NCBI RefSeq assembly: GCF_000150275.1
Contig: NW_002060964.1
Location: forward strand, 108,720-172,719
Reading direction: 5' to 3'
Source: Trichoplax adhaerens
Taxonomy: Eukaryota > Animalia > Placozoa
Length of the DNA stretch: 64,000 nucleotides
Positions 38,901-60,820 of the stretch are shown in pieces (position 1 is the first letter of the stretch; each line of letters opens with the position of its first letter). The position numbers and the translations under genes were made by a program. The notes below the pieces were generated by a model. That model did no database searches. It worked only from the letters and a program-made list of their open reading frames with translations, and was not told where the DNA came from.

Positions 38901-41900
38901 AAAAATATTAGAAAAAAATAGCTATCAAAGCACTATTATTATCATACGAATATAATGTTAAGATACTGTTCTTCAGCTTCTTCTAAATCCTTTCCTAGAG
39001 ACTTGACAATTGCATCTTTACGATCCACAACACGTTCAAATGTTTGCTGTAGGACTTCAATATCTTTAACTAAATCCTTCGCTTTGGCTATGGAAACCAA
39101 AACGTGTATATGTTTAGCCGGTATCGATCACAGTTAGCTGAATCATGTTATTCAAGGTGTACACGGCAAAACCGAGAGTAAAGTAAATGCAAGTGTGACC
39201 GATTTTCATTTCATCTTACACCTTCTCGTAACGTAGTAATCTTGCGTATCGATTGTATTCACCTCAGGCAAATACAATATGCAGTAGCAGTCGATGGGAA
39301 ATGGGCATTTTTGGCAGCATATACTCATTATTTATATTGGTATACTAGCAGTATTGCCATTCATTTATTTATGGATTGATCAAGGATATTACCGGATATT
39401 GGGATCCATCACTATGCCTCGAGACAACTAATCGTGTACCACTGTACTTCGATTTACTGTTTTCTATTTGATGGTATCGAAGAAAAGGCTAACGGGAGTT
39501 AGATGAGTAATTAATTCTCACGATAATGGACTGTACAGTACAGTACTAAACAAACATCCTCGATAGACTATGGCATTCATTTCCATTTTATTACTGTCTT
39601 TTTTAGAATAGTAGAAGCTCTGTGAAGAGCCTTCAAAAATTGCAACGCCGACTGTCGTTTAGACGAGTCGTCGTGCGGGATATTGGGAAAAGTTTTCAAC
39701 TAGCAATAACCGCGCCTCGGTAAAACCTCACTGGCTACGGTACTGCCACTGCGCAAAGTTATCGCTTCAAACTTTTCGAGGGTATATATATTATATTCCG
39801 ATTACTTTAATTATGGGATTAAAATTATGCAAATTAGTTCGATAGCTGTTTCTGCACGAAGGACTTCTGTACAGTACAGTACAGTACCATGGACTAAAGT
39901 ACTAGAAATAATACCTGCTGTAGTAGTAGTCTATGACTGTACTGTACTGTACATACTGTGGTTGTCCATATGGTGCATGATGCAGTACTGTACAGTACAG
40001 TACTGTGGAGTTTATTTACTGTAATTAATCAATGTACTGTACTGTAGGCTTTACCATAAATGCAGATAACTGAATGGGAAACTATCCTAAAGGTTGTATC
40101 AATTTGTATGCCATACTGTACTGTACGATGCTGTGCTGTAATTGTACACTCTTATGATCCATTTGGTTTTAGTTAACATTTGAAAATTAATTTAGGAAAA
40201 ATAATGTAGATATACGATATATTTAACGCAAATTATCATTATAGTTACGCTACAATATTTTACATCAATAATAATCAATTGCATTAATTCGATAACGTTT
40301 CATATTGCCTTAATTTCTTGCCCTATTTCAACAAAATTTGTCAATACGAGATACGTATCCTGATAAATTGAATTGAAGCTTGATTCGAGTGAAATTCCTT
40401 TACAACTACATGTTTATAATGTCTACTCTTTTGGATTGACTTTATCATTCATAATTGACTTTCAGATGAGCCGCTATTCTAGATTATCATCCAACTTTTA
40501 TCGTAAACGAATTTCAATTATATGCAGTAAGCAGAGTACAGGATCGTGTTAGCTAATTTATGCGTACGTGAATCTAAATATATTTTATGCTGTATCCACA
40601 TCCAAGTCTGACTGAATCAATCATAACAGGATCTTCTCTCGAGCAAGAGACTTCAGATTAAAGTAATAATATCATAAAATGCACGTAGCTCTTTAATATA
40701 TACTATTCATTACAACTCTAACTGAAGGCAATTACTGTATATTGCTTAGGGAGGATAATTCTAACACCCAATGAAGTCAAATCTACATCGCCACATTTTT
40801 TATCCTACATTAATGTCATGAATATTTCTAAGCATGGAAATTTAAAATGACTTCTAAAAAGTTTAAAATACAGCTAGACTAATTTTATGATAGCTCCAAA
40901 CTGAAAATACATAAACATGTAACGGTAATGAGAGCTTCTTTATCAGTCGATGTACAATCTTAATTACTTTATAGATCTTATGAAACTCTTATTTTACTAT
41001 ACCTTCTCGCATGATTGCTCGCCATTGATAATTTAACTTATTAATGTTAAATTTGGAATACTTTTCCTCTTTGCCAAGCTTTTCCTATTGGAAATCATCA
41101 ATGATTGCAACTTATAAGTACTCAGAAGTGCAAATATAATTTAATGATATTGCACAATTACATTTTTAAGCGTCTTTCTTATGAAAAATGTAATAGAATA
41201 TGGTATATTGGGGGGAGAGGATAGAAGTTGATACGTTTGTATTTCTAACTTCAAAGACTAATATCATTTATTGTGAAAGTCATCCTTTATCATGTGCTGT
41301 TCATATGATTAATTCTTGCGATTAGAAAAACGAACGTGTTAATGCATTAATTTAATATAATAAATCTTTCAGATTACTCATTCCATTACTAATACGATAT
41401 TTAATTACAGTCTGATGTTAGATATTAGTTTATTAACGACTGAGACTACTTCACGGTAAGGTGGCACTATGAACAGCTAAAACAAGGTATTCCTTCAATT
41501 TTTAATGGTGAAATTAAGTTTTATCCATAGCCGCACTAGTATCATCGTGATTGAATATGCGGTGTTATTTAGGAAAGCGATTGACGATGTTTTCGCTTGT
41601 CTACGTTATATGAAGCGTATCATAGGTAATCGATAGGCTAATAATATCCTACCGTACTATAGTTCGACTAACCTACTAGCTAGGATAACTCTGTATGATA
41701 TAACGAATAACTCGTGTAATAATCGAAGAAAAATATATTTCCTTTTAAAAACCTAATTTACCTTTAGAAATTGCGTCAGTAAATCTTCTTTATTTTTTCG
41801 CATTTCCTCTTCTGCCAACTGCTTCTGCTCGAGATAAAGCAGTCTTTCCTCTTCAGTCATGTTGGCAAGCTTTTTCTTTTTAGCACTTCCCTTCTTTCTA

Positions 41901-46123: not shown

Positions 46124-47254
46124 CTACAACCAAATATTTTCTGGATTCATTGGATAAAATTGATTCCGGCATTCTTCTACAACCTTTTCTACTTTCTGCC
46201 GCATTTCCGAACTTGCTTTTTTACTTAGTATTATTTGCATACATGAATATATTTTAAGGCTACCTTCTTCATCTAACTTTTCCACTAAGATATCGAGTAA
46301 ATTTTGTAATCCTCGTGGACTTCGATCCATAAAGAGATCGTTTGGCGATCGATGACCCAGAAATAAGATCATTTGCAAATCTTGTAGAGCTTCAGTATTA
46401 TCGTGTAATTCGTGATAACGACTAGGATTCCTGAATATATCCACGTACATCTTAAAGTTGTTTGAAAATCGAATAGCAGAAGTGTACGGTATGTCATAAC
46501 AGTTTATTCCTAGCCTATGACATGAATATCTAATCAGACTATCAGCAGATAACATTCGATATTCTTCGTCATTTGCAATAAAATTTTTGATGTGATTTCT
46601 AATAAAATAGCTTAATGCCATATTGCCATTTTCTTTAACAGCACTATGAAATAGTAGTGCGATACCGTCGTCGGTTAATAGATCTGTCACGATACTATCT
46701 AAAAGATTAGTGACTCCAGATCGACTATTTTTATCTGGAAGAGAAAGATAGTATATACCATGGATAAGATAGACAAGACGAAATCGATTCATCGATTGTG
46801 TAATCTCTTCCTTCGTATACAACAGCTGTGCCACATCAGATTTTAATAAATCGCCGAACGTAATTTGAAAATTTTTCAACGGGATAGTTTGATCACGATA
46901 AGCATTTGAAAGATTATGATAAATTGGTGGTACTTTCTCGTCATGTAGAATATTTTGGTTTAAAGAGACTCCGCTACCAATAAAATTGAAATTGTTGTCC
47001 AATCCTCTAATATCTAAACCTGACTTAAATTTAATTCCTTTTAAGTATCTTATAATAGTATCTCCTTCACCACACGCGATATCAGCCACTAAAGTGACTC
47101 GTTTATCGTCGTTTAGTAAACCTTGGTTTTGTAATTTATTTAAGAAAGTATGATTGACTATCGATCCATTTCTTTTTTCGTTACTTAAGTTCTTGTAGGC
47201 TCTGAAAGCTTTATCATATTCATAGACATCGGTTTTAATTGCAAATGGATGCAT
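46124..47254 (-). CDS. Class I SAM-dependent methyltransferase, histamine-N-methyltransferase-like, copy A (376 aa, intronless)
   Basis: Motif I VADIACGEG, IRGLD, and FRLVYLIHGIYYL / LLTDDGIALLFH parallel HNMT WDFIHMIQMLYYV / LLGTNAKMLIIV. An in-frame stop just upstream fixes the ATG. Confidence 0.8.
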   Translation of the reverse strand: MHPFAIKTDVYEYDKAFRAYKNLSNEKRNGSIVNHTFLNKLQNQGLLNDDKRVTLVADIACGEGDTIIRYLKGIKFKSGLDIRGLDNNFNFIGSGVSLNQNILHDEKVPPIYHNLSNAYRDQTIPLKNFQITFGDLLKSDVAQLLYTKEEITQSMNRFRLVYLIHGIYYLSLPDKNSRSGVTNLLDSIVTDLLTDDGIALLFHSAVKENGNMALSYFIRNHIKNFIANDEEYRMLSADSLIRYSCHRLGINCYDIPYTSAIRFSNNFKMYVDIFRNPSRYHELHDNTEALQDLQMILFLGHRSPNDLFMDRSPRGLQNLLDILVEKLDEEGSLKIYSCMQIILSKKASSEMRQKVEKVVEECRNQFYPMNPENIWL

Positions 47255-54440: not shown

Positions 54441-55577
54441 TTACAACATAGATATTATCTTTTCTGGGCTGATTTGAGAAAATAGATTCCGACATTCTTC
54501 TGCAACCTTTTCTACTTTCTGCCGCATTTCCGAACTTGCTTTTTTACTTAGTATTATTTGCATACATGAATATATTTTAAGGTTGCCTTCTTCATCTAAC
54601 TTTTCCACTAAGATATCGAGTAAATTTTGTAATCCTCGTGGACTTCGATCCATAAAGAGATCGTTTGGCGATCGATGACCCAGAAATAAGATCATTTGCA
54701 AATCTTGTAGAGCTTCAGTATTATCGTGTAATTCGTGATAACGACTAGGATTCCTGAATATATCCACGTACATCTTAAAGTTGTTTGAAAATCGAATAGC
54801 AGAAGTGTACGGTATGTCATAACAGTTTATTCCTAGCCTATGACATGAATATCTAATCAGACTATCAGCAGATAACATTCGATATTCTTCGTCAGTTGGA
54901 ATAAAATTTTTGATGTGATTTCTAATAAAATAGCTTAATGCAACATTACCATTTACTTTAAGAGAACTATGAAATAGTAGTGCGATACCGTCGTCGGTTA
55001 ATAGATCTGTCACGATACTATCTACAAGATTAGTGACTCCAAATCGACCATTTTTATGTGGAAAAGAAAGATAGTATATACCATGGATAAGATAGACAAG
55101 ACGAAATCGATTCATCGATTGTGTAATCTCTTCCTTCGTATACAATAGCTGTGCCACATCAGATTTTAATAAATCGCCGAACGTAATTTGAAAATTTTTC
55201 AACGGGATAGTTTGATCACGATAAGCATTTGAAAGATTATGATAAATTGGTGGTACTTTCTCGTCATGTAGAATATTTTGGTTTAAAGAGACTCCGCTAC
55301 CAATAAAATTAAAATTGTTGTCCAATCCTCTAATATCTAAACCTGACTTAAATTTAATTCCTTTTAAGTATCTTATAATAGTATCTCCTTCACCACACGC
55401 GATATCAGCCACTAAAGTGACTCGTTTATCGTCGTTTAGTAAACCTTGGTTTTGTAATTTATTTAAGAAAGTATGATTGACTATCGATCCATTTCTTTTT
55501 TCGTTACTTAAGTTCTTGTAGGCTCTGAAAGCTTTATCATATTCATAGACATCGGTTTTAATTGCAAATGGATGCAT
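54441..55577 (-). CDS. HNMT-like SAM methyltransferase, copy B (intronless, near-identical to copy A)
   Basis: Long ORF; the ATG at 55577 is homologous to the copy A start. The ORF track starts at an upstream TTG instead. Confidence 0.8.
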   Translation of the reverse strand: MHPFAIKTDVYEYDKAFRAYKNLSNEKRNGSIVNHTFLNKLQNQGLLNDDKRVTLVADIACGEGDTIIRYLKGIKFKSGLDIRGLDNNFNFIGSGVSLNQNILHDEKVPPIYHNLSNAYRDQTIPLKNFQITFGDLLKSDVAQLLYTKEEITQSMNRFRLVYLIHGIYYLSFPHKNGRFGVTNLVDSIVTDLLTDDGIALLFHSSLKVNGNVALSYFIRNHIKNFIPTDEEYRMLSADSLIRYSCHRLGINCYDIPYTSAIRFSNNFKMYVDIFRNPSRYHELHDNTEALQDLQMILFLGHRSPNDLFMDRSPRGLQNLLDILVEKLDEEGNLKIYSCMQIILSKKASSEMRQKVEKVAEECRNLFSQISPEKIISML

Positions 55578-57762
55578 TATTATACTAATAGTTTCTTTTG
55601 TTAACTTCAATCCCTATGTTAAATTAAGGGTAATGGCTCGGCATGTGTAATGAACTTGATTTGTTTGCTCTAGGTAACTTCTTTATCAATTGATAAGTAC
55701 ACTAGAAATCTCCGATTACCATCCCTTAAGGCAGCCAATGAATGTAAATGAGCCGACTTCTAGACTTATTAAATATGCAAAGCACCCCGATCGCTGATCC
55801 TATTTATCCATCGATTATTAGAATAATATGGTATGATGTACTCTAATCCATAGTTATTTATGACTGTAACCTGTACCTATGACCACCTCATGTAGCTTAA
55901 TTAATAAATTATGTTAATCAAGTATTGTATGATGAATGACTTAGTCTAGTATTGCTCTTACACGCTAAGCTATGCATACAGCAAGCATATGACCGTAGTT
56001 AACTTTACAAGTTATTCTAGATAACAGAAATACAACATCAATTAGTGCAGAATAGTGTATAATCGAGTCCATCATATGCTCTTACCATTACAAGCGGGTA
56101 CTAAATGGAACATTTGGACAATTTGTAGGGGACCTTTATTAATATCGTATAGTATTATTGCTTGGCTTGTAAACAAAATATTCTAAATATTTATAGCGCT
56201 AACATAAATACACTGAATTTATCATTTTATACAATAACAACAATTGTTATTGACGTCGTATATTCAATAAAACATGCTACTGGTTATGGTAGTTCGAACT
56301 TTTGAATTAAAGAACTCGTTTTGTACAGATAAATAAAAATTAGCACAAATCTTAAGTCTTGGATAAAGCAGAAGTGAAAAAAAAACACTCTACTGCAATT
56401 AAACGGTACTGATATGTTATTCGATAATAAGAACAAATTGATCGTGCCAGCGTTAACAACTAAGAGTAGAAACACAACAAGTGAGTTATTTAGCTCATTT
56501 TTTATATAATTATTTACATTTATATAGCCCACGCTAGATATGCCAAGTTATTAGAGCTTTATACTAAAGTGGGCATAGAATAAGCTCTGAAATGATCTAC
56601 TGTGTAAACATGTAGATATTAGAGGATATCCACCTTATTATGACCTACGGTATTAGTTATCTATATAAAGTTATCGACTAACTTTACCCTTTGTGGGTGT
56701 TAAACCATTGAAAAATTTTTGGAATGAATGATGGATTTAATTAAGATCTCACGAAAATCTTATAGAGTTTCAGTATTATCCGATGAAGTACTGTAAATTA
56801 TAAAATAACGGTTAAACTTCTTAATATCGGTGTCTTTTTATACTCATTCCAATTCTTTGAGAATGAGCTAATGAAGGGATGCAAAATTTTCTATCGAGTG
56901 AACGCATTCCGTAGAGTTCTTATCTTTAGATGATCTCATTCACTTGCATCTAAATGTTTAGTTACACTATCAAAATAATAATCTCTAGAATTATCTAATT
57001 GACCTATCATCTTTTCCATTACGTTTACATAAAGTGTTTTTATAATTACTAATACTTTATCATGCCGAAAGACATCAGTCTAAATTTGTATATCTCCATA
57101 ATATTCTTTACTTCTTTGTTGTCCAATTTATCTAAATATAGTACATAACGAGAGGAAAATCTTAATATGTAATTTGATTTTTTTGTGGATAACTGCTGTA
57201 CCACTTTTATAGGCAAGATTCTTTAATACTGGATAAGCTATAAACAGCAGACTACGGCAGATGATCGTTTGGCCATATGAAATCACATTCTAGAAAATTA
57301 CTCCAACACTAATTAGTCCAGGACTAAAATTCATCTATACGTATAAGCAAAAGAAAAACGCCTTTTTTTTAAATCTAATTAACAAACCGTTCCCATATTT
57401 TGCATAAACAAGCTACAGTAGATGAAAAATATAAACAACAGTAATTTAAAATATACTAGTACAAACTCACGTCGCTTTGCTGACGGTTTACGATAATGTA
57501 CCCATTTGTTAATAATTAACAGATAGTATTACCATTCGATATTATATATATCCCAGTAATAGCCAGGCACTACTATATTCACAGCTATGCTTGTAGAATA
57601 CTACTTTTCAATAATACATTCACGGATGAAATGCTATGAAATGCTATATTAAGATTAGTTAATGGTCCAAAGCAAATTATGATAACTAATGTACGGTGAT
57701 GGACAAACCAAGTTAAGATTAGCAGGTACTGTAAGAATCTTATACTGACCTATTGAAATGAA

Positions 57763-57802
57763 CCCATAATCACAGTCATCTAACAGTAGTATAAATACCC
57801 TC
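57763..57802 (+). promoter_or_regulatory. snRNA-type promoter (PSE CCCATAATCACAGTCATC plus TATAAATACCCTC) with no recognised snRNA downstream; predicted +1 at 57820
   Basis: Ungapped match to the U4 promoter: 15/18 in the PSE block and 12/13 in the TATA-CCCTC block, with identical spacing. Confidence 0.65.
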
Positions 57803-57945
57803 CTCGCTGCTCGTGTACAGGGTGGGTCGGTGGCATTTCATAATATAGAGGATAATTAACGCCATTCCCTACATCATCTACTACCGTATTCGATATATAG
57901 CAGTCAACGCCAACATTTGTACTGTACTAGCAATACTAAGCAATA

Positions 57946-58670
57946 CTAAGATGTTGCTATATTAAAATTTCTAGATGCTATCCAAAGGAAATTCGATACG
58001 CCGCTACTTAGTGACTTGTTACCAATTACCTTCTTCTTTAATTTAGGAGTGCTATTAAACAGTAGCACGATACTGTTATCGATTAATAGATCTGTCATAA
58101 CACCGTCAAAAAGATTAGTGATTCTAAACCGACCAATTTTATACGGGGAAGCATAGTACATGCTTCCCCATAAAATCGACCCATCGATTGCTTAATCTCG
58201 TCTTTCGTATATATATATACTGTATATACGGTACAGCATCTGTATCATATGAGATTTTAACAAATCGCCGTATATATAATTTAATAATTTTTCAATGGGA
58301 TAGTTTGATTTACGATAAGTACTTGAAAGAATATGATAAATTGACATTTTTTTCTCTTCTGCATCTACTGTTTTTGCTTACAGGGTTGCTGCTATCAATA
58401 AATTTAGAACAATTATCCCATTCCCTAGTGCCTAGACCTGTTTTAAATTCAATACCTTTAAAATACCCTAAAATAGTATCTTCTCCAACACATATCACAT
58501 AAATAATTAAAGTTACTAGATTGCTTTCGCTCAATGAATCTTGATGCCATAAAATCTTTAAGAGAGCGATAGACTAATGATCCATTCCTTTTTTCGTGAT
58601 ATAATTTCTTGTAAGTCTGAATGCTTTATCATAAGCAAAAATATCATTTCTATTGCAAATGTCTCCTTCC
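57946..58670 (-). pseudogene. Frameshifted, 3'-truncated methyltransferase pseudogene (homology may extend to about 57830)
   Basis: DIFAYDKAF, VTL..VICVGEDTILGYFKGIEFKTGLG and YYASPYKIGRFRITNLFDGVMTDLLIDNSIVLLFNS appear in different frames with stops. Confidence 0.88.
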
Positions 58671-59713
58671 TTAGCTTTTATCTACTTCCTATCATCGACT
58701 TTATTGCAATACGGTATGTTCTACTTTAATTTGTAGCTATTTAAGACATTAATACCTATGATTTTGTGTTTCTGAACAAATGTAATATGTTATTCAAGTA
58801 CTATGCTATCACTAGTTCGATATTAGATCGATGCTATACCACGAAGTTGCTCAGCAAGTATTCCAATATTACAGTCAATCTTACAGTACTGTACACTAAA
58901 TCCACAGGACAGAAAGCTCCGTGCTTCAAGTTAGGCCCAAGATGCGCCATTTAAGCTATTAGATTAGTGATTTCCCTTCGAAAAAGAGACATAAAAGGAG
59001 TCAGACATCATGACGCTGGCACTCAAAGGTTAGTAGTCTCTAGGGAATAGCCGCCTGACTACCGGACTCCATGATTATTATTAACATTACTGTTGAATGC
59101 CACTACTGGAAATTGCGTGGTAGATCAATCTTGCAAAGAAATCCACTTTTTCTACTCTAGTGTATTTATTTCAGCCATCCTATGCTGTAGAAGAAAGCAA
59201 ATGAACTATTATCCATTCAATTTGTAAAAGCAACTGCTGCAAAATGATTATTTTGGCAGCCATGCCGAATGTAATCCGTCAGTGATCTCGATGTGCTATT
59301 GAATTGACATGAAGCATTGTTTTGAGCGGCAAGAATTTTTTAGTATGGACAAGGGGTTGTCATTTCAATTCAATAGAACAAGGTTACTGCTAATTTTGTA
59401 CAGACATTTAGCCGTAGGTTACCTAAAGTCAAAATTAATGAATACAGCATTATTGAACACGAAGAATAGCTTGAGCAAATATTCTCTTATTATGATGATT
59501 TTATGCAGGCTTATTGATTCCAAAAAGAAAGAATAATTTTGCAATAGCAGTGGTGCTTTGTTTAAATCAATGTAGCGAAACATACGTATTAGCCCTTGTC
59601 AACTGGTTACTAACTGTTTGCTAAGGACTTGTTAGGCTGCAAAGACATCGGTTGCTTGTTAATAAACTGACATTGGACTTGCACGTGTACTAAAGAAATG
59701 AGCAGTAGAAACC

Positions 59714-60820
59714 ATGGAGGAACATGCAATTAGAACTGATATTTTCCAATATGATAAAGCTTTTCTTGCCTACAAGAGTTGCAACAATGATCATGAGAGA
59801 TTGTCTCGATTAAATCATACTTTCTTAAAACAACTTCAAGATTTAGGCTTGTTCTATCGTCAGGATCAAGTTACTCTAGTTGGCGATATCGGCTGTGGAG
59901 ATGGAGAAGCTACCATTACTTACTTAAATAATATTGAATTTAAAGGAGGATTAGATATTAGAGCAATGGATAAGCTTGCCCAATTCGCCGGTACACATCA
60001 GTCTTCAGTGAAGAATGCCACTTCAGAAGGAGAAAAAGGACTAGCTAACGAAACTTTCTCGAAAGCTAAACAATCACAGGTGATCCCGTTAAAGAATTAC
60101 CAAGTAAACTTTGGCGATATGTTGGAAGTTGATGTCGCACACCTGTTGTATACAGATGAAGAGATCAAAGAATCAATGAATCGATTTAATCTTGTCTATC
60201 TCTCTCACTCGGTCTACTACGCACGCGATCAACATAAAAATGGCCGATACGGTGTTACTAATCTTCTAGACAGTGTTGCTACTGATTTATTGGCAGATGA
60301 TGGTGTAGCAATACTATTCCATGCCGGTCTTGAATTTGATACAGTCACCTCAATTAGCTATTATACTAGAAGCCTAATTCAAGATATTGTTCCAACTGAG
60401 GAAGAATGCAACAGAATATCTGCTACTCACATTATCAGCAATTCTTCCCGTGAATTAGGGTTAACCTATTTTGAGATACCGTACAAGTTCGAGCTGTACT
60501 TTTCTAAGGATTGTAAAAAATACGCTGATGTATTTAAGGATCCTAGCAGATATCACGAATTACAGAATGATCCTGCAGCATTACAAGACTTGTATAAAAT
60601 CATATTTATTGCCCATCGCTCACCAGATGATCTCTATACAGATCATTCTTCTCGTGGACTAAACAATTTAGTGGATAAAGTACTAGATTGTATTAAGAGA
60701 AATGATAGTATAACTCTATCTGCAAGTATGCAAGTCATCCTAAGTAGAAAAGCAAGCGACGAATTTAAGCAGAAGATAGAAACAGCTGTTAAACAATGCC
60801 AGAATAAATTTGGTGACTAA
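59714..60820 (+). CDS. HNMT-like SAM methyltransferase, divergent copy C (368 aa, intronless)
   Basis: VGDIGCGDG motif I, IRAMD, FNLVYLSHSVYY and LLADDGVAILFH; collinear with copies A and B. Confidence 0.85.
   Translation: MEEHAIRTDIFQYDKAFLAYKSCNNDHERLSRLNHTFLKQLQDLGLFYRQDQVTLVGDIGCGDGEATITYLNNIEFKGGLDIRAMDKLAQFAGTHQSSVKNATSEGEKGLANETFSKAKQSQVIPLKNYQVNFGDMLEVDVAHLLYTDEEIKESMNRFNLVYLSHSVYYARDQHKNGRYGVTNLLDSVATDLLADDGVAILFHAGLEFDTVTSISYYTRSLIQDIVPTEEECNRISATHIISNSSRELGLTYFEIPYKFELYFSKDCKKYADVFKDPSRYHELQNDPAALQDLYKIIFIAHRSPDDLYTDHSSRGLNNLVDKVLDCIKRNDSITLSASMQVILSRKASDEFKQKIETAVKQCQNKFGD

Follow-up and report, generated by a model that had tools for sequence, protein, structure and literature searches.

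A non-autonomous Helitron family of Trichoplax adhaerens carries a module resembling snRNA-type promoters at its 5' terminus

The window, that is, the whole stretch of DNA that was analysed, comprises 64,000 nt of the Trichoplax adhaerens genome (contig NW_002060964.1, positions 108,720 to 172,719 of the forward strand). U4 snRNA was the sole Rfam family member found in it. Three methyltransferase-like genes are located at 46124-47254, 54441-55610 and 59714-60820, together with a decayed pseudogene that shares ~37% identity with them and has lost its 3' third. The pseudogene ends ~70 nt from an internally deleted copy of a dispersed repeat, here assigned to the Helitrons, and does not resume on the far side of that copy. 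Within the copy, on the opposite strand, lies a PSE-like block followed by a TATA-like block, which the first-pass annotation had taken for the orphan promoter of an unrecognised small RNA gene starting at 57820. The coordinates of these features are collected in Table 1. Further along the window, at 59026-59159, 132 nt bounded by GT..AG are missing from a contig of run X8; the gap is either a strain deletion or an intron belonging to an unannotated transcript that would run on the plus strand upstream of the 59714 gene.

Table 1. Features of the window, in order of position, with the basis on which each was placed.
Feature	Position	Strand	Basis or remark
U4 snRNA gene, used for comparison	39618-39760	-	Rfam RF00015, 126.9 bits, E 1.5e-28
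U4 promoter	39778-39817	-	PSE 39800-39817, TATA block 39778-39790
Internally deleted copy of a ~0.7-kb non-autonomous Helitron	57456-57835	-	BLAST to reference copy (L010:866-1568)
Helitron 3' terminus, CTAG	57456-57459	-	Host T next at 57455; same end at the L058 filled versus L037 empty site
GC-rich subterminal hairpin, 6 bp, ~11 nt from 3' end	57470-57486	-	DNA fold -4.4 kcal/mol
Junction of ~312-bp internal deletion (reference 288-599)	57727-57740		Overlapping BLAST pieces; between short direct repeats of TACTGTAAGA
PSE-like block	57763-57780	+	18 nt; antisense to Helitron
TATA-like block	57790-57802	+	13 nt; 27 nt from PSE start to TATA, as in U1 and U4
G-rich variable terminus, complement of Helitron 5' end	57820-57835	+	Start site predicted by analogy with U4 at first base
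Unique flank, body of the predicted RNA, outside the repeat	57836-57950	+	No similarity among the flanks of copies
Decayed methyltransferase-like pseudogene	57907-58651	-	tblastn; residues 18-258 of the paralogue at 54441-55610, with stops

Read on the plus strand, the 18-nt PSE-like block is followed by 9 nt, the 13-nt TATA-like block, a further 17 nt and a G at 57820. The spacing between PSE, TATA and +1 is identical to that of the U4 promoter. Ungapped alignment of the module with U4 yielded 27 identities over the 31 block positions and 9 over the 42 non-block positions, which comprise the spacer and the sequence on either side of the blocks (Fisher p 1.9e-8). Both the reading of the sequence and the U4 alignment thus bear out the block layout and U4-like spacing that had been described for this site. 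The accompanying claim, that the spacers had diverged as expected for functional elements, holds for the comparison of U4 with the transposon but fails among the transposon copies, in which the spacer is conserved like the blocks. When the whole 64 kb of the window was scanned, a PSE of such strength with a TATA box at the right distance occurred only in U4 and in the candidate.

U1, U2, U5, U6, U11 and U12 were located in the same genome and their upstream regions were read for comparison with U4. In all six the core is (A/C)C(C/T)ATAA(T/G), with AAG-type positions after it. In the Pol II-type genes the TATA-like box lies 27-29 nt from the start of the PSE (27 in U1 and U4, 28-29 in U2, U5, U11 and U12) with +1 at 57-58 nt, whereas in U6 these distances are 33 and 63 nt. 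[quoted passage not shown] 2009 (PMC2655684). The module places its TATA-like block at 27 nt and the predicted +1 at 57 nt (-57/-30), as in U1 and U4. Using a PSE position weight matrix built from six snRNA genes, U4 being left out, the PSE of the window scored 11.2 bits, within the range of the real genes (7.1-20.6 bits, leave-one-out), and the variants found in other transposon copies scored 11.2-16.5 bits. Its score and correct TATA spacing therefore make the motif credible as an snRNA-type promoter module of the Pol II spacing class. PSE matches of at least 11.2 bits occur at ~3 per 100,000 random positions in the window, and because ~20 PSE and TATA pairs of this strength are expected per genome by chance, on a rough estimate, the motif taken alone is weak evidence.

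The promoters of U1, U2, U4, U5, U11 and U12 (PMC2655684) and the module have four things in common: CCCATAAT as the core of the PSE, AAG-type positions after it, a TATA-like box at 27-29 nt, counted from the start of the PSE, and a distance of ~57-58 nt to +1. Unlike those promoters, the module has no snRNA downstream and no upstream octamer, is multi-copy and mobile, and is variable at one consensus position. The latter is position 11 of the PSE, which is A in 7/7 real snRNA genes and C, G or A among the transposon copies. The octamer or DSE, a ATGCAAAT-type motif, is present in U2, U4, U6 and U12 and absent from the element. A BLAST search of the element against the regions upstream of U1, U2, U4, U5, U6, U11 and U12 for a possible donor recovered only PSE and TATA words and ACAGT-type microsatellite words, with no extended homology. 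A metagenome scan for the module returned zero matches.

Several further features of snRNA-class loci were observed. Most snRNA genes (U2, U4, U5, U6 and U11; L032-L034, L061; window ~39870-39960) are preceded, at a distance of 100-300 nt, by arrays of an ACAGT/GTACTGTA microsatellite; the abundance of this microsatellite motif in Trichoplax was already known (PMC2871265). Two identical matches to the PSE and TATA pattern that do not belong to the transposon, at C1151:664-698 and C1403:185914-185948, read ACCATAAGTGAAGTAATC, 9 nt, TATAAATA, and look like a real snRNA-class promoter, possibly that of U4atac or another small RNA. Within 1.1 kb downstream of the U6atac gene (104.8 bits; C1402:438491-439592), in the same orientation, there are five partial matches of 30-50 bits to the 3' part of the U6atac model; they make up a short tandem array of truncated copies.

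The whole assembly (105.6 Mb, 1414 contigs) was searched with a 35-nt pattern of the PSE and TATA blocks in which variable positions were left free. At least 127 matches were found, against 19 for a reversed-pattern control, so that the promoter-like sequence at 57763 is not the orphan it had been thought to be. The 9-nt spacer is conserved too in nearly all of the matches. Thirty pattern loci were fetched for comparison of their boundaries; copies remained similar over ~650 nt on the left side of the motif and ~70 nt on its right side, where similarity stopped abruptly, with unique flanks beyond. The repeat is therefore a discrete unit of ~0.7 kb with the motif ~70 nt from one end, and no conserved unit follows the module downstream of that end. 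All full-length copies carry both blocks within ~75 nt of what proved to be the Helitron 5' end, on the opposite strand. Among copies, which were ascertained by the motif itself, divergence from the majority base was ~3-7% everywhere and the module was not distinct. Blocks that are conserved no better than the spacer are what neutral decay after insertion would give.

The left end of the repeat reads A followed by CTAGTAC. The G-rich right end, the complement of the Helitron 5' end, varies in length and in most of the 23 tail-bearing copies finishes with GGGA and then T, a few copies having GGCA or GGAA instead. The idea that this terminus forms a G-quadruplex is weak, four G3 runs being present in only 2/23 tails and three in most. 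Variation within the family includes a longer subfamily (L038:777-1498, L039, L042, L005, L014, L021 and L027) in which internal tandem repeats of ~175 bp replace reference positions ~98-186. L004 (~1900-2500) contains two Helitron 3' ends that face each other head to head with a few bases between them. A loosely conserved motif, TTAATT(CTT), occurs 8-12 nt past the CTAG end in about half of the copies; it may reflect target preference, or the 3' end may alternatively lie slightly further out.

The copy in the window aligns to the reference in two BLAST pieces, reference 1-287 to 57454-57740 and reference 600-703 to 57727-57838. In the sense of the minus strand, a host A adjoins it at 57836 and a host T at 57455. 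Its 5' terminal dinucleotide is TG, a point change from the TC of the family, and its tail belongs to the GGCA/GGAA-type variants rather than to GGGA. The TACTGTAAGA direct repeat at the deletion junction is family D6 in a full copy. The subterminal hairpin of this copy is weak and not significant against shuffled sequences (z -0.79). An empty site corresponding to the window copy is unobtainable because the pseudogene is too decayed and has no continuation left of the insertion.

Read on the minus strand of the window, the family begins 5'-TC(CC...) and ends CTAG-3', and in 23/23 tails a host T adjoins the terminus. A paralogous pair of loci supplied the one empty site found. At the filled site (L058:2590-2670, a copy containing a 50-N assembly gap) the sequence runs ...CTGTAA / TCCC... 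...CACTAG / TCTACTC..., and at the empty site (L037:8940-9000) ...CTGTAA TCTACTC...; insertion took place exactly between A and T, with no duplication. The host sequence around this pair is a second, unrelated dispersed repeat (L037:8916-9027, L041:5667-5781 and L058:537-618 with 2630-2712) that served as the landing site of one Helitron copy. Comparison of the flanks of copies for a target-site duplication gave results no better than mismatched-flank controls. The genome contains Helitron Rep domains (PF14214, Helitron_like_N). One contig, C1281 (L058), has a degenerate Rep domain (PF14214, 151 bits, E 4.5e-44) and a Pif1 2B remnant (PF21530) between arms homologous to the repeat, reference 430->205 upstream and 176->39 downstream, in the orientation that the TC and CTAG ends predict. 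This Rep/helicase copy contains stops and an intact RepHel partner was not found; a Rep fragment lies inside another copy (L056). Given the TC and CTAG ends, the hairpin, the flanking A and T, the association with Rep and Pif1 and the A^T empty site, the repeat is concluded to be a non-autonomous Helitron family whose sense strand is the minus strand of the window.

Other classes of element were considered. The repeat contains no ORF, a search of a full copy revealed no terminal inverted repeats, and four full copies gave no match to Rfam at gathering or E-value thresholds. A MITE was rejected for lack of terminal inverted repeats. An LTR reading was likewise rejected, because a pair of copies in L037, on one strand and separated by 5 kb, has no ORF of more than 115 aa between its members, no duplicated flanks and no TG/CA ends. 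Truncation of copies is polar, 8 of the 11 copies identified by their 3' ends stopping at variable internal points without a tail, and a first-look count gave 470 3' ends against 127 module ends. This excess is the one feature that the canonical LTS-dependent Helitron model does not predict, and it raised the reading of the repeat as a SINE-like retroposon, made by target-primed reverse transcription of an RNA with the sense of the window minus strand and bearing the motif in its 5' region. That reading was rejected, as very improbable, on the precise A^T empty site without duplication and on the Rep and helicase remnants inside family members. The repeat, moreover, has no poly(A) or 3' microsatellite, no tRNA-like part was detected by ARAGORN and no tRNA, 7SL or 5S part was found, and non-LTR elements are nearly absent from the Trichoplax genome (PMC2871265). 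The many copies that keep a 3' end without a 5' end, and the assembly gap in the filled-site copy, were nonetheless counted against the Helitron assignment.

Insects possess repeats of the DINE-1/HINE type, which are short and non-coding and derive from Helitrons. The present family is alike in all three respects, and also in having a variable microsatellite close to one of its ends and, in one subfamily, tandem repeats inside the element (~175 bp here); it has no known sequence relationship to the insect repeats. A survey of Trichoplax repeats (PMC2871265) put the transposon content at 0.13% in all and counted 17 Helitron fragments. The present family is not described in that survey, to which the comparison was confined.

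The similarity between copies ends at 57835/57836, and the RNA predicted from 57820 would thus consist of the last 16 nt of the repeat followed by accidental flank. The first-pass annotation was correct in finding no known RNA family here: with the covariance models of Rfam 15, nothing in 57400-58600 came near a gathering threshold. Its proposed 5' stem fared less well, the fold of 57820-57950 being worse than that of shuffled sequences (z +1.23). Read evidence was available at contig level, so that starts and strand are unreadable, and of the four runs one (X15) is on record as RNA, the other three being uncertain as to RNA or DNA. In X15, a small run of contigs, depth was zero at 57813-58216 and low at 58239-59194, over and beyond the pseudogene; depth over the repeat is summed over all copies and uninformative. 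Runs X3 and X8 covered the whole stretch evenly, behaving like DNA. The expression data give no support for an RNA from 57820 and are weak evidence against it.

A SNAPc-dependent small RNA gene with its start at 57820 would draw on the correctly spaced promoter-like module, and its novelty would stand given that no known family matches. Against it, the promoter is part of a repeat that has at least 127 copies, each followed by a different flank, there is no structure signal, no Sm site or terminator was seen in the first-pass annotation itself, and RNA depth in X15 is zero. The proposal of a new gene at this site is consequently unsupported and largely refuted, its probability being minimal. 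The fallback offered with it, a captured snRNA promoter making antisense RNA, was sound in its first half, the module being Helitron-borne and present in every full-length copy; for antisense RNA against the methyltransferase pseudogene there is no evidence.

The locus is probably best explained as a Helitron copy bearing a genuine snRNA-type promoter, either captured or kept under selection. The Helitron inserted between a host A and T without target duplication. Its module, on the antisense strand at approximately positions 20-75 from the 5' end, points outward; if U4 is taken as the model, initiation would fall ~16 nt within the terminus of the transposon and transcription would run into the flank. 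An active module would transcribe whichever flank each copy had landed beside. The DNA from 57836 is to be read as accidental flank and not as a small RNA gene. Capture by, or selection in, the Helitron lineage and any promoter activity are what we infer from the blockwise identity with U4 between randomised spacers, the exact spacing, a PWM score in the range of real genes and the habit of Helitrons of capturing promoters.

The alternative that must be weighed is that the same Helitron copy has merely a fortuitous resemblance to PSE and TATA in an AT-rich terminal region that binds no SNAPc and drives nothing. Such chance pairs exist genome-wide, given the frequency of PSE matches at this score, and the ~20 expected per genome were counted against the promoter together with the zero depth in X15, the missing octamer or DSE, the variability of the otherwise invariant PSE position 11 and the failure to find a donor gene. 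To these may be added the even conservation of blocks and spacer within the family. The pattern of identity with U4, however, extends to positions that are specific to U4 and go beyond the generic consensus, the distances match exactly and the predicted start coincides with the terminus of the element. Chance resemblance is accordingly the less favoured reading, possible but on the unlikely side, and a genuine promoter module within the Helitron is preferred.

The closest known system is promoter capture by Helitrons in bats. [quoted passage not shown] HelibatN3 of vespertilionid bats, which carries the NUBPL promoter, resembles the present family in being a rolling-circle element with 5'-TC and 3'-CTAG ends and a 3' hairpin, inserting at A^T without duplication. 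It is likewise a non-coding derivative present in more than 100 copies with a host-type promoter able to impose transcription on its flanks (PMC4778049, PMC4224331), an activity that is predicted here. The differences lie in the class of promoter, an snRNA-type (PSE and TATA, SNAPc-class) rather than an mRNA promoter, and in its location at the extreme 5' terminus in antisense orientation, with the predicted start inside the terminal 16 nt. Promoter class, terminal position and outward orientation would be what is new in the Trichoplax family.

The position of the module suggests a role in transposition, which we put forward as a speculation with a low probability. A placozoan Helitron lineage may have incorporated an snRNA-type (SNAPc/TBP) promoter into its own 5' terminus. 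Transcription initiated outward, precisely where cleavage occurs, would melt the duplex or leave negatively supercoiled DNA in the wake of the polymerase. Either would supply the single-stranded DNA needed by the HUH nuclease, a requirement left open in the case of Helraiser (PMC4778049). More than 100 outward promoters, able to seed non-coding transcripts, would have been scattered through the genome as a by-product.

A candidate for a new SNAPc-driven RNA is removed by these results and replaced by the end of a transposon. At least 127 promoter-bearing ends and, at a first look, several hundred 3' ends are comparable in order of magnitude to everything that has been reported as transposon content for Trichoplax (0.13%, with 17 Helitron fragments; PMC2871265). 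A single Helitron family on this scale indicates that the repeat annotation of Trichoplax is incomplete. Helitrons are known for capturing and spreading mRNA promoters; an snRNA-class promoter at the very terminus of the element would be new. If active, the module would furnish new Pol II small-RNA start sites ready-made, and might hint at how single-stranded DNA arises at Helitron ends.
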